The translations under genes and the position numbers were made by a program. Positions 20,101 to 23,100 of a DNA stretch of 64,000 nt are shown piece by piece. How positions within the stretch are numbered: position 1 is the first letter of the stretch; every line of letters begins with the position of its first letter. The DNA comes from Macrostomum lignano. Lineage: Eukaryota. The DNA lies in assembly GCA_002269645.1 (NCBI GenBank), contig NIVC01002990.1, positions 1 to 64,000 on the forward strand, given 5' to 3'. Below the pieces are notes generated by a model. It was given only the letters and a program-made list of their open reading frames with translations. It was not told where the DNA came from and made no database searches.

Positions 20101-23100
20101 CCGAAGTCTTTGCTCCAGTATCAGACGGCACTTGATTAGATTAGTGACCCCCGCTTCATTCTTTTCCTACGTGCTTTTTGTTTATTTTCATTCTGTTCAA
20201 CCTTGTATGGAATGAAGGTACGACTCGTAGCTACGGCGTGCTGCATGCGTGTGCGCCCCTTACTGTATCAATTATTCCTAAGCTTTATCTGCTTAGGGAG
20301 ATTGGGAAATCGTAAGTTGCAAGCCGAATTCCTTGCCTATAATTGGCTTTTTTTCCCTTAACCGGTCCATCTGGCGGTGAATCACGACCCCAGCATGCGG
20401 CCCTGTATGCTGGTACTGAAGCATTTTTATTGTTATCTGACAAAGCCGCCGCTTCAGATTCCCTGAGAATTGGGATTGCTAGAGTTGCTGCTGGATAAAG
20501 ATCCCCCTAAGGTTAGGGAATCAATCCTCGGCTTTATCAGAGAGAGGGGAGGAACTGATGCGCGTGGCTTGTGCAATTCTGCTAGTGATATTCGGCACTG
20601 GTGAGCTCGCGCCACTGCCTGCCGCTGCCAGCTCGTCTCTACTCTCTTGTCTCTTTTCTTCTCTCCCCTCCCTTCTCTCCCCTCCCTTCTCTCCCCTCTT
20701 CTCTCCCTTCCCTCCCTCCCTTCTCTCCCTCTCTTCTCTCCCCTCCCTTCTCTCCCCTCTCCTCTCCCTTCCCTCCCTCCCTTCTCTCCCCTCTTCTCTC
20801 CCCTCCCTTCTCTCCCCTCTTCTCTCCCTTCCCTCCCCTCCCTTCTCTCCCCTCTTCTCTCCCCTCCCTTCTCTCCCCTCTCCTCTCCCTTCCCTCCCCT
20901 CCCTTCTCTCCCCTTCTCTCCCCTCCCTTCTCTCCCCTCTTCTCTCCCTTCTCTCCCCTCCCTTCTCTCCCCTCTTCTCTCCCTTCCCTCCCTCCCTTCT
21001 CTCCCCTCTCTTCTCTCCCCTCCCTTCTCTCCCCTCTCCTCTCCCTTCTCTCCCCTCTTCTCTCCCTTCTCTCCCCTCCCTTCTCTCACCTCTTCTCTCC
21101 CTTCCCTCCCTCCCTTCTCTCCCTCTCTTCTCTCCCCTCCTTTCTCTCCCCTCTCCTCTCCCTTCCCTCCCCTCCCTTCTCTCCCCTCTTCTCTCCCCTC
21201 CCTTCTCTCCCCTCTTCTCTCCCTTCCCTCCCCTCCCTTCTCTCCCCTCTTCTGTCCCCTCCCTTCTCTCCCCTCTCACCTCCCTTCCCTCCCTCCCTTC
21301 TCTCTCCTCTCTTCTCTCCCCTCCCTTCTCTCCCCTCTCCTCTCCCTTCCCTCCCCTCCCTTCTCTCCCCTCTTCTCTCCCCTCCCTTCTCTCCCCTCTT
21401 CTCTCCCCTCCCTTCCCTCCCTCCCTTCTCTCCCCTCTTCTCTCCCCTCCCTTCTCTCCCCTCTCCTCTCCCTTCCCTCCCCTCCCTTCTCTCCCCTCCC
21501 TTCTCTCCCCTTTCTTCTCTCCCCTCTCCCCTCCCTTCCCTCCCCTCCCTTCTCTCCCCTCTTCTCTCCCCTCCCTTCTCTCCCCTCCTTCTCTCCCCTC
21601 TTCTCTCCCCTCCCTTCTCTCCCCCCTTCTCTCCCCTCTCGTCTCTCCCCTCCCTTCTCTCCCCTCTCGTCTCTACCCTCTCTTCTCTCCCCTCTTCTCT
21701 CCCCTCTCTTTCTCCCTCTCTCCTCTCTTCTCTCCCCTCTCGTCTCTCCCCTCTCGTCTCTCCCCTCTCCCCTCTCCCCTCCCCTCCCTTCTCTCCCCTC
21801 TTCTCTCCCCTCTCTTCTTTTCCCTCTCTTCTCTCCCCTCTCTTCTTTCCCCTCTCTTCTTTCCCCTCTCTTTTCTCCCCTCTCTCCTCTCCCCTCCCTT
21901 CTCTCCCCTCTCTTCTTTCCCCTCTCTTCTCTCCCCTCTCTCCTCTCCCCTCTCTTCTCTCCTCTCCTCTCTCCTGTCTCCTGTCTCCTGTCTCCTGTCT
22001 CCTGTCTCCTCTCTTCTATCCTATTTCCTTTCTTCTATCCCCTCTTCCCTATCTTTTTATCTTCTCTTTTTTATATTTTTTCTCTTCTTCCGCATTCGTA
22101 CCTCTCTCCTCTCTTTTCTATATTGTCATCAAGCGCATGCATTAGAGCTCTACAGACCTCCTCATCTTCTTGCCTTTTCTTACCTACCTACTCGAATATG
22201 AATATCTGAGCCAGTGTTCCATCTGACTGAGCTTCGCCTAGAAAACCGGCCCGCCTCCACCCCCCTTCCTACGGAGAAGATCCAATTGGCAGTGATCGGG
22301 CTGGGGCTATGATAGACAGCCAGCCCGGCAACTCAGTGTAGCGATAGGAGTACGAGAGGTTAACATTTTTTAACCATAACTGACCGGCCTCTTATCATGT
22401 AGAGGCTGGGGGGAAACAAGAGTGGGTAGAGATTGGGAAAGACGTCATGACAGATGAAGCGGATGGAAGGGGAGGCTGTGCGCCGCTGTTGCACTTGTCT
22501 GTCTGCCTGTTTCTCCTCATCCTCTCCTTCCAGTCTGTAATCTTTGCCCCACCCCCTTGACTCAGCGAAGCTGCTCTCTGCCCTGCCCTGTACGCCCAGT
22601 CTGCATAGGAAAATCTATTATTTGCCAACTGTCAACTGCAGGGGCTGATCCTTCACTGCGCCTCCCGTGCTGCTCTAGAAACACTGAGCTGATGTAGAAA
22701 CAAGCGCCTGCTGCTTGATTCTCTGCTTCTAGTTGCCTCTCCTGTGTATTTACTAATTTGACTGATGGCTTGATTTGAAATTTGCCAATTATTTGGAATG
22801 GGATGTGGATCTGGGGATTGTTGCAAGCTGGGAATGTGCAGGATTAATGATCTTGAGATACGGATTTAATGTTTGGGATTTTTATATTATCGGGAATGTT
22901 TTATAAGCATTGGGAATTGGGATTTTGGGATTTGGGATCTTGGGATTTGGGATCTTCTGATTTTGGATCTTGGGAGTTGGGATCTTGGGAGTTGGGATCT
23001 TGGGAGTTGGGATCTTGGGAGTTGGGATCTTGGGAGTTGGGATCTTGGGAGTTGGGATCTTGGGAGTTGGGATCTTGGGAGTTGGGATCTTGGGAGTTGG

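Follow-up and report, generated by a model that had tools for sequence, protein, structure and literature searches.

A putative signal-peptide exon in an intron of the Macrostomum lignano LAR gene is probably a fortuitous open frame

Ig-less forms of LAR-type receptors have been described in C. elegans, where the ptp-3 gene gives rise to three transcripts from independent promoters (PMC4418752, PMC7281833). PTP-3B, which has its own promoter, consists of five FNIII and two PTP domains without the Ig domains (PMC4418752) and differs in function from the long isoform (PMC7281833, PMC6133548). For human LAR/PTPRF, a short protein (H0Y4H1) with five FNIII and two PTP domains and no Ig domain is quoted in PMC4418752. 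In the flatworm Macrostomum lignano, trans-splicing of a spliced leader (SL) is widespread; it concerns about 30% of the genes according to PMC8629364, and the published share ranges from 30 to 39% (PMC8629364, PMC5730564). A sequence-only reading of the locus described here had drawn on both precedents, which hold, and had rightly taken the source organism to be a flatworm. It proposed that an internal signal-peptide exon in the intron between FN5 and FN6 of a LAR gene generates a short, Ig-less isoform, possibly started by SL trans-splicing.

The window, i.e. the whole stretch of DNA that was analysed, comprises positions 1-64000 of M. lignano contig NIVC01002990.1. Judged by its sequence, the host gene genuinely encodes a receptor protein tyrosine phosphatase of the LAR type (type IIa). 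Its exon at 40197-41183 matches PTPsigma (4bpc, 2fh7) and LAR (1lar, 6kr4) with E-values of 1e-234 to 1e-241, and other RPTPs match far worse. The Pfam family Y_phosphatase was found in two stretches, as in a tandem D1-D2 arrangement, and Ig3 as well as FN1 to FN9 were identified as Pfam Ig/fn3 matches in successive phase-1 exons. All FN3 exons of the gene are of phase 1-1. Ig1-2 are beyond the 5' end of the contig, as is the native signal peptide. The two exons that flank the intron of interest are the following (a slash marks the splice junction):

18007 to 18318, + strand: FN5 exon, phase 1-1, donor AGG/GTGAGT; Pfam fn3 match with E=2.6e-15; present in the deposited protein PAA53983.1
27920 to 28249, + strand: FN6 exon, phase 1-1, acceptor ctgcag/TG; Pfam fn3 match with E=5e-7; the exon that the candidate unit would join

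The intron between them has a length of 9601 nt. In the deposited protein PAA53983.1 (BOX15_Mlig000129g4), which stems from a genome-guided RNA-seq assembly (Wudarski et al. 2017; PMC5730564) and whose best PDB match is the Ig-FN ectodomain of PTPdelta (E=4e-41), FN5 is followed directly by FN6 without an insertion. FN4 (16453-16776) is missing from this protein; thus, at least one FN exon of the LAR gene may be skippable. Besides the LAR model, no second gene is called in the deposited annotation of contig positions 1-41382. The visible annotation lists the longest product per gene only, and low-abundance isoforms are often missed. None of the papers found by a literature search mentions Mlig000129, and the supplements of PMC5816591 mention neither Mlig000129 nor PTPR genes.

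All sequence features that had been described for the candidate unit are present at their positions, as determined by direct reading of the window:

20480 to 20482, + strand: TAG stop in frame with the ATG and upstream of it; the open frame that follows has its first ATG at 20558
20539 to 20540, + strand: AG of the candidate 3' splice or trans-splice acceptor, ggctttatcAG/AGAG; a CAG is typical of M. lignano acceptors
20541 to 20557, + strand: 17-nt leader AGAGAGGGGAGGAACTG between acceptor and ATG, from direct reading of the sequence
20558 to 20600, + strand: putative signal-peptide coding part, consisting of the ATG, 13 codons and 1 base; sole match of a scan for an ATG, a hydrophobic run and GTRAG
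20601 to 20606, + strand: candidate 5' splice site GTGAGC in the context CTG/GTGAGC
20600 to 27920: predicted short-isoform junction, GCTAGTGATATTCGGCACTG joined to TGCCCTCGGCGCCCAGAGAT
18318 to 20541: predicted cassette-inclusion junction, TGTGGCTACACTGGGACAGG joined to AGAGAGGGGAGGAACTGATG

The complete unit (20541-20600) reads AGAGAGGGGAGGAACTG ATG CGC GTG GCT TGT GCA ATT CTG CTA GTG ATA TTC GGC ACT G. It is 60 nt long, of phase 1-1 and in frame with FN6, i.e. it has the symmetric-cassette property that had been ascribed to it. Joining 20600 to 27920 creates a Val codon (G+TG) that is followed by PSAPRDL; joining 18318 to 20541 creates a Glu codon (G+AG), such that inclusion as a cassette also stays in frame. 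The AG acceptor and the cassette property add little support, because no stop interrupts the frame between 20483 and 22198 in any case, and divisibility by 3 is a 1-in-3 chance. In roughly 150 nt upstream that were scanned (20408-20557), there is no ATG other than the start at 20558.

The putative peptide begins with M-R, continues with a 10-residue apolar core and ends in G-T-V-P-S. The predicted h-region is strong, and the n/h/c layout resembles that of a signal peptide. The c-region appears suboptimal, with a Pro at -2 for cleavage at VPS/A and a Phe at -3 for cleavage at GT/V, according to our own reading of the -3/-1 rule. The sequence context of the ATG is weak (C at -3, C at +4). The unit would join exactly at the start of an FN3 domain.

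Tandem arrays make up about half of the 9601-nt intron (TRF). The unit lies in a non-repetitive island (approximately 20055-20631), which is enclosed by two arrays and contains a further frame of similar kind:

19414 to 20054, no strand assigned: 24-nt tandem array, 5' bound of the unique island (TRF)
20212 to 20317, + strand: second signal-peptide-like phase-1 frame with donor GTAAGT (20312-20317), from the frame scan
20632 to 22045, no strand assigned: CT-rich tandem array that begins 31 nt past the candidate donor (TRF)

The 60-nt unit and FN6 are both in frame with the stretch at 20212-20317; between 19454 and the acceptor at 20540, no GTRAG occurs other than the donor of this stretch (20312). 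Self-BLAST found the island to be single-copy within the window, which excludes membership in a local repeat family. No family was matched in an Rfam scan of the window; a scan for promoters and terminators of the bacterial type was discarded as irrelevant to M. lignano.

The motif GT[AG]AG occurs at 65% of M. lignano donors (PMC8629364), and the candidate donor at 20601 conforms to it. Among the 402 GT sites of the intron this donor ranks 9th, as judged by a small PWM derived from 12 donors of the LAR gene; 142 GTRAG sites exist on the + strand of the window. When donors are restricted to GT[AG]AG, no frame other than the unit combines, in any phase and on either strand, an ATG with a hydrophobic run of at least 9 residues (128 kb of sequence, three phases). 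Of the 86 short frames that run from an ATG to GTRAG (both strands), the unit is also the most hydrophobic, by a wide margin (mean Kyte-Doolittle value over 10 residues, 3.39 versus 2.60). Shuffling under preservation of local composition gave an expectation of 0.025-0.05 in-phase matches per gene span for strict donors. If GTR was demanded only, about 0.5 equally hydrophobic in-phase matches were obtained for each 22 kb of ectodomain introns in phase 1, and with loosely defined donors 36% of the shuffles yielded equally hydrophobic in-phase frames. The excess over chance thus depends on how strictly the donor is defined.

The codon usage of the unit is intron-like and unlike that of the host gene. 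Its GC3 of 0.46 equals the median of intronic windows, compared to 0.775 in the exons of the gene, and, with a CAI of 0.44, it stands at the 5th percentile of genuine windows of 14 codons. The rare codons CTA, ATA, TGT and GCA are used, and the coding and non-coding likelihoods have a ratio of about 0.3. Codon bias is often weaker in first exons and signal peptides than in the remainder of a gene.

Trans-splicing of the SL at 20541 is the weakest part of the earlier interpretation. The M. lignano SL comprises 35 nt (CGGTCTCTTACTGCGAAGACTCAATTTATTGCATG; PMC8629364), and the acceptor motif [T/C]TNCAG is enriched at its target sites (PMC8629364). The hexamer TATCAG at 20535-20540 does not match this motif; the mismatch is weak evidence, because only about 44% of the known SL sites (9551/21754; PMC8629364) carry it. 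A matching site is located further upstream, and two SL junctions were predicted:

20452 to 20457, + strand: CTTCAG, exact match to the SL motif, 100 nt 5' of the ATG without an intervening ATG (pattern match only)
Predicted SL junctions: TTTATTGCATG joined to AGAGAGGGGAGGAACTGATG, and TTTATTGCATG joined to ATTCCCTGAGAATTGGG

If the SL (...TTGCATG) were joined at 20541, its terminal AUG would not be in frame (AUG AGA GAG GGG AGG AAC UGA) and would open a uORF of 6 codons, the UGA of which overlaps the main AUG (cTGATGc). Upstream of the acceptor at 20540, GTRAG cis donors are found at 18319, 19454 and 20312. Trans-splicing at 20541 would therefore require a transcription start within 20313-20540. 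Compared to known SL-bearing 5' ends of M. lignano, the unit is alike in that a CAG acceptor precedes it, and unlike in that TATCAG is outside the motif, the SL AUG is out of frame and cis donors lie upstream. Neither the SL sequence nor an SL RNA gene was found within the window. A track of SL reads for M. lignano is available at gb.macgenome.org (PMC5730564, PMC8629364).

Five hypothetical products (the short isoform, a two-exon version, an exon-1a version, the cassette-included and the FN4-included form) were looked up by exact sequence and are absent from a collection of 15 billion proteins. FN5, unit and FN6 in series, used as the query of a word-indexed protein search, gave no match; this index seems to be devoid of M. 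lignano, because a D1 query likewise gave no identical match. By means of an exhaustive phmmer search with FN6, only the M. lignano protein itself and otherwise generic FN3 proteins of at most 34% identity were retrieved, and the start of FN6 had no exact DNA match in the JGI metagenome contigs that were scanned. The best relative of D1 belongs to a compact LAR gene of an unrelated animal, found on a contig of an ENA metagenome; as this gene starts at FN7, it is uninformative on the FN5-FN6 intron and was set aside.

The sequence-only reading had further predicted a receptor composed of FN6-9, TM, D1 and D2. The unit would indeed join FN6 in frame, but the frame as assembled stops before the TM segment:

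31299 to 31345, + strand: frameshift that separates the frame of FN9 from the juxtamembrane one; the stop of the annotated protein is at 31380

PAA53983.1 accordingly ends with ...RRTPASGW, before the TM segment, and the downstream frame through TM and both PTP domains is not intact as assembled. The frameshift, which may be an assembly indel or the mark of a decaying homeolog, affects every isoform encoded by this copy. Consequently, the predicted FN6-9/TM/D1/D2 receptor also requires that the frameshift is an assembly error.

We consider it probable (roughly 0.6) that the unit is a fortuitous open frame and not a regularly used LAR exon. It would be there by chance: in a small repeat-free island of a long intron full of satellites, an ATG and a T-rich run, the latter entailing a hydrophobic peptide, happen to end at GTGAG in the phase common to all FN3 exons. 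The phase match is cheap evidence, because every FN3 exon of this gene is of phase 1-1. In the mature mRNA, FN5 (18318) would be spliced straight to FN6 (27920), and we infer that no minor transcript uses the unit. The evidence on a used exon, taken indirectly, leans against it because of the FN5-FN6 junction of the model, the absent products and the intron-like codons. Counter to a chance frame are the uniqueness with strict donors, the top hydrophobicity among 86 frames and the rarity in shuffles; so are the predicted peptide's textbook signal-peptide layout with its exact join at the FN3 start and, by analogy, the existence of internal-promoter Ig-less LAR isoforms in C. elegans. Two further roles of the site were rejected: a recursive splice site, as the acceptor is followed by AGAG and not by GT, and a poison exon, as the unit contains no stop codon.

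Somewhat unlikely, in our judgement, is a genuine role of the unit as an alternative first coding exon, from which an Ig-less receptor is made under control of a promoter inside the FN5-FN6 intron. Its 5' end would either carry a direct cap or receive the SL at 20541 (alternatively at 20457, the CTTCAG acceptor), translation would start from 20558, and donor 20601 would be joined to FN6. The product would possess its own cleavable signal peptide, likely cut near VPS/AP, followed by FN6-FN9, TM, D1 and D2, and by analogy would act like PTP-3B. Both would be Ig-less and keep the membrane-proximal FNIII and the two phosphatase domains, but PTP-3B contains five FNIII domains instead of four (FN6-FN9); homology between the sequences of the two first exons is not expected. 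H0Y4H1, as quoted in PMC4418752, has a different start point relative to the FN domains. PTP-3B is backed by cDNAs, mutants and reporters, whereas the M. lignano unit is a candidate read from the sequence. The rarity of in-phase frames when donors are strict (p about 0.03-0.05), the predicted n/h/c layout, the approximately 150 nt devoid of ATGs together with the in-frame stop at 20480, and a GTGAG donor and CAG acceptor that agree with the species consensus argue for a first exon, as do the independent promoters of ptp-3 and PTP-3B itself (PMC4418752, PMC7281833) and the SL trans-splicing of 30-39% of M. lignano genes. These points have to be set against the absence from both the deposited transcript-based model and the protein collection, the likelihood ratio of about 0.3 that goes with intron-like codons, the weak initiation context, the suboptimal c-region, the out-of-frame SL AUG and TATCAG outside the SL motif, and a frameshift near 31300 that would truncate the product before TM unless it is an assembly error.

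Vertebrate LAR-family RPTPs contain alternative mini-exons (meA-meD/LASE), which are short in-frame ectodomain cassettes; these inserts consist of a few hydrophilic residues in linkers or loops of Ig or FN domains. The M. lignano unit, with 20 residues and a 10-residue apolar core, differs from them, and we know of no counterpart among the short, hydrophilic LAR mini-exons of an apolar mid-ectodomain stretch of 10-13 residues. We give least credence to a cis-spliced alternative cassette between FN5 and FN6 (18318 to 20541, 20600 to 27920): the length of 60 nt, the phase 1-1, the CAG acceptor, the GTGAG donor, the open frame and the possible skipping of FN4 (16453-16776) would suit it, but the deposited model lacks it, the cassette-included product is not in the protein collection, the codons are intron-like and the divisibility by 3 has a 1-in-3 chance. 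The apolar core of 10-13 residues has the size of a signal-peptide core and is too short for a membrane span. This led to the rejection of a TM segment and leaves the earlier suggestion that cis inclusion could alter receptor topology on weak ground. It is very improbable, too, that the island is the 5' end of a different transcript, such as a nested gene or a non-coding RNA, whose donors at 20312 and/or 20601 splice elsewhere than to FN6 or whose RNA is untranslated. Two signal-peptide-like frames with good donors (GTAAGT 20312, GTGAGC 20601), less than 400 nt apart and both in the sole unique island between two satellites, are consistent with such a transcript; however, the rest of the intron is without a convincing coding frame or Pfam-type domain, its open frames being satellite translations, and the deposited annotation calls no gene there.

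As a fortuitous frame, the unit illustrates that a T-rich intronic island beside satellites can mimic a signal-peptide exon. A genuine first exon, on the other hand, would mean that a regenerating, basal flatworm produces LAR in a form that lacks the Ig domains, the parts to which proteoglycans (heparan sulfate and chondroitin sulfate) and synaptic partners bind. This would parallel PTP-3B, whose roles in morphogenesis and in axon guidance are separate, and would argue for an old isoform design. An internally initiated, head-less LAR would then be common to nematodes, flatworms and perhaps vertebrates, and not a nematode peculiarity. Owing to the working transgenesis in M. lignano, the internal promoter and the function of the isoform would be directly testable.

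The 60-nt unit in the intron between FN5 and FN6 of the LAR gene probably represents a fortuitous frame, a reading to which we assign a probability of about 0.6. Its sequence is AGAGAGGGGAGGAACTG-ATG-CGC-GTG-GCT-TGT-GCA-ATT-CTG-CTA-GTG-ATA-TTC-GGC-ACT-G, and the intron is 9601 nt long.

Features of the FN5-FN6 intron and its flanking exons
18007-18318, forward strand: FN5 exon, ending AGG/GTGAGT, phase 1
19414-20054: 24-nt tandem array, one border of the unique island
20480, forward strand: in-frame TAG upstream of the ATG of the 60-nt unit
20539-20540, forward strand: acceptor-like AG of the 60-nt unit (ggctttatcAG)
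20541-20600, forward strand: 60-nt unit
20601-20606, forward strand: candidate donor GTGAGC, directly 3' of the unit
20632-22045: CT-rich array, other border of the unique island
27920-28249, forward strand: FN6 exon, starting ctgcag/TG, phase 1

The sequence-only reading had taken the unit for the start of an Ig-less LAR isoform, and the acceptor, 17-nt leader, ATG frame, GTGAGC and in-frame joining to FN6 that it described are all present. Joined to FN6, the unit provides an in-frame product start; spliced at both ends, it yields a 20-residue in-frame insert. The symmetry of the unit is thus real as well, but carries little weight, as one length in three is divisible by 3 anyway. Since, in addition, the CT-rich satellite keeps the frame open from 20483 to 22198, acceptor and symmetry add little. 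The start context is weak (C at -3, C at +4), and the closest upstream ATGs are at 20395 and 20407.

The host gene extends over about 4.6-42.7 kb of the forward strand in the exon order Ig3, FN1-FN9, TM, D1, D2, with Pfam matches to Ig, fn3 and Y_phosphatase. In the PDB, D1-D2 match PTPsigma and LAR best (E about 1e-240), and the extracellular part is closest to the Ig-FN ectodomain of PTPdelta; by these matches, the host gene is a true type IIa (LAR) RPTP. With the FN6 exon as query, exhaustive phmmer searching gave one close protein, PAA53983.1 (BOX15_Mlig000129g4, Macrostomum lignano), which is encoded at 4692-31382 of NIVC01002990.1 (GCA_002269645.1) and is identical to the exons of the window; the window accordingly corresponds to 1-64000 of this contig, and the sequence-only reading was correct in presuming a flatworm. 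The contig begins within the LAR gene (window 1-4600), so that the exon for the native signal peptide, Ig1 and Ig2 lie beyond its 5' end and the first residue of PAA53983.1 is an internal Met of Ig3 (MPVVRWF, 4692). It also omits FN4 (16453-16776, forward strand), a phase 1-1 exon coding for a bona fide FN3 domain (Pfam fn3 E=6e-10), and joins FN3 directly to FN5 (...KTMEF-N-PDAPED...). No exon of the gene has weaker splice sites than FN4 (cag without a preceding pyrimidine tract; donor CAG/GTTTGT), which may be spliced alternatively as a cassette or may have been overlooked in the annotation. A compact LAR-type animal gene, spanning FN7 to D2 in about 8.5 kb, lies on the ENA metagenome contig ERZ25070786 ctg123501l (1100-9520); its phosphatase domains are 76-90% identical to those of M. 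lignano, its FN domains only 24-40%.

The GenBank annotation was built from a genome-guided RNA-seq assembly, with boundaries from SL and poly(A) reads (PMC5730564). PAA53983.1 leaves out the 60-nt unit and joins FN5 straight to FN6. Exact-sequence look-up of five hypothetical products (short isoform, two-exon version, exon-1a version, cassette-included form, FN4-included form) in about 15 billion proteins found none. This absence is negative though not decisive, because each gene is represented on record by its longest product alone, and rare isoforms frequently go unrecorded.

Both strands and three phases were scanned for an ATG followed by at most 40 open codons with an unbroken run of at least 9 of AVLIFMCW and a GT[AG]AG donor. 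The 60-nt unit was the sole match in the window; it also ranked first in hydrophobicity, with a large lead, among 86 short ATG-to-GTRAG frames (3.39 vs 2.60). Its donor came only 9th among the 402 GTs of the intron. Shuffles preserving local composition gave 0.025-0.05 expected in-phase matches per gene span with GT[AG]AG donors. With donors defined as GTR alone, equally hydrophobic in-phase frames occurred in 36% of shuffles; most real sites are properly compared with GT[G/A]AG, since this is the enriched motif, present at 122,399 of the 187,627 donors of M. lignano (PMC8629364). A look-elsewhere-corrected p of about 0.05-0.1 is a fair estimate.

Roughly half of the intron consists of tandem arrays, and the unit sits in a unique island of about 580 nt, single-copy in the window. 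The island contains a second, weaker signal-peptide-like frame (20212-20311, forward strand; donor GTAAGT, to 20317), 290 nt upstream, in phase 1 and in frame with the unit and FN6. Two such adjacent frames might point to a genuine 5' end, or might follow from the T-rich composition of the island alone. Array-filled introns (24-mer, CT-rich 14/26-mers, 15-mer, 21-mer, (CATCAT)n) occupy window 18407-26775 and 32870-35400, a similar CT-rich array filling the intron after the TM exon; these arrays give rise to very long spurious open frames.

The 60-nt unit does not resemble the coding sequence of the LAR gene. Its GC3 is 0.46, the median of non-repeat intronic windows, compared to 0.775 for the gene's exons (1802 codons). 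Its codon adaptation to the gene's usage, 0.44, falls at the 5th percentile among real 14-codon windows and in the upper-middle range among intron windows; the coding/non-coding likelihood ratio is about 0.3. Judged by rule of thumb, the peptide could plausibly serve as a signal peptide: M-R would be the n-region, followed by a 10-residue h-region and GTVPS as a short c-region. Neither candidate cleavage site is ideal (VPS/A with Pro at -2, FGT/V with Phe at -3).

SL trans-splicing, which had been raised as a possibility for the unit, is established in M. lignano, where the SL CGGTCTCTTACTGCGAAGACTCAATTTATTGCATG is added to about 30% of genes at acceptors enriched in [T/C]TNCAG (PMC8629364). 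The acceptor at 20540 (TATCAG) does not fit this motif; CTTCAG at 20452-20457 does, and the leader from there is also ATG-free. An SL joined at 20541 would bring its AUG out of frame (AUG AGA GAG GGG AGG AAC UGA), the UGA overlapping the main AUG. Neither an SL gene nor the SL sequence occurs in the window. With GTRAG donors at 18319, 19454 and 20312, all upstream of the site, trans-splicing at 20541 would need an internal start between 20313 and 20540, so that the SL hypothesis leaves the requirement for an internal promoter in place.

A rough prior of 0.1-0.25 that a LAR gene has an internally initiated Ig-less isoform was combined with three likelihood ratios: that of the hydrophobic frame in phase (about 10) favors a real first exon, and those of codon usage (about 0.3) and of the missing annotation (about 0.6) disfavor it. 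The result is roughly 0.15-0.45, and a real first exon of an Ig-less isoform is accordingly the less probable but still serious alternative. It is improbable that the unit is the 5' end of another transcript; for contig positions 1-41382 the annotation calls no gene besides that of PAA53983.1. Least probable of all is a cis cassette, and the topology change proposed for cis inclusion is weak, because the apolar core is too short to span the membrane.

Further downstream, three Ig-domain exons (50463-52645, forward strand; Pfam Ig_3, I-set, V-set) form a separate gene with a possible start in its first open frame, MAKWSLHLTGFINHFPLCTVSA; its product resembles a small adhesion protein with three Ig domains. 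A piggyBac-type transposase frame of 413 codons (56184-57422, forward strand; DDE_Tnp_1_7 E=1e-45 and C-terminal zf-Tnp_2) and an unbroken 602-codon frame (58250-60055, reverse strand), with an RGG-rich N-terminal region and no Pfam match, follow.

The gene copy as assembled carries a frameshift near 31299-31345 (forward strand), between the FN9 end and the juxtamembrane region, close to the A/G-rich stretch cgaagaaagtgg; this shift is why the annotated protein terminates at 31380. No gene model covers the TM and phosphatase part (about 31.3-42.7 kb) in the annotation listed for contig positions 1-41382. As M. lignano has duplicated chromosomes and redundant scaffolds (PMC8629364), the frameshift could be a long-read assembly indel or mark a decaying duplicate copy.

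The precedent cited for an Ig-less isoform holds: C. elegans ptp-3 produces three transcripts from independent promoters, and PTP-3B comprises five FNIII and two PTP domains without Ig domains (PMC4418752), with functions distinct from those of PTP-3A (PMC7281833; PMC6133548). The M. lignano copy as assembled stops before the TM segment; a product consisting of FN6-FN9, TM, D1 and D2 would, if made, act in the same way as PTP-3B.
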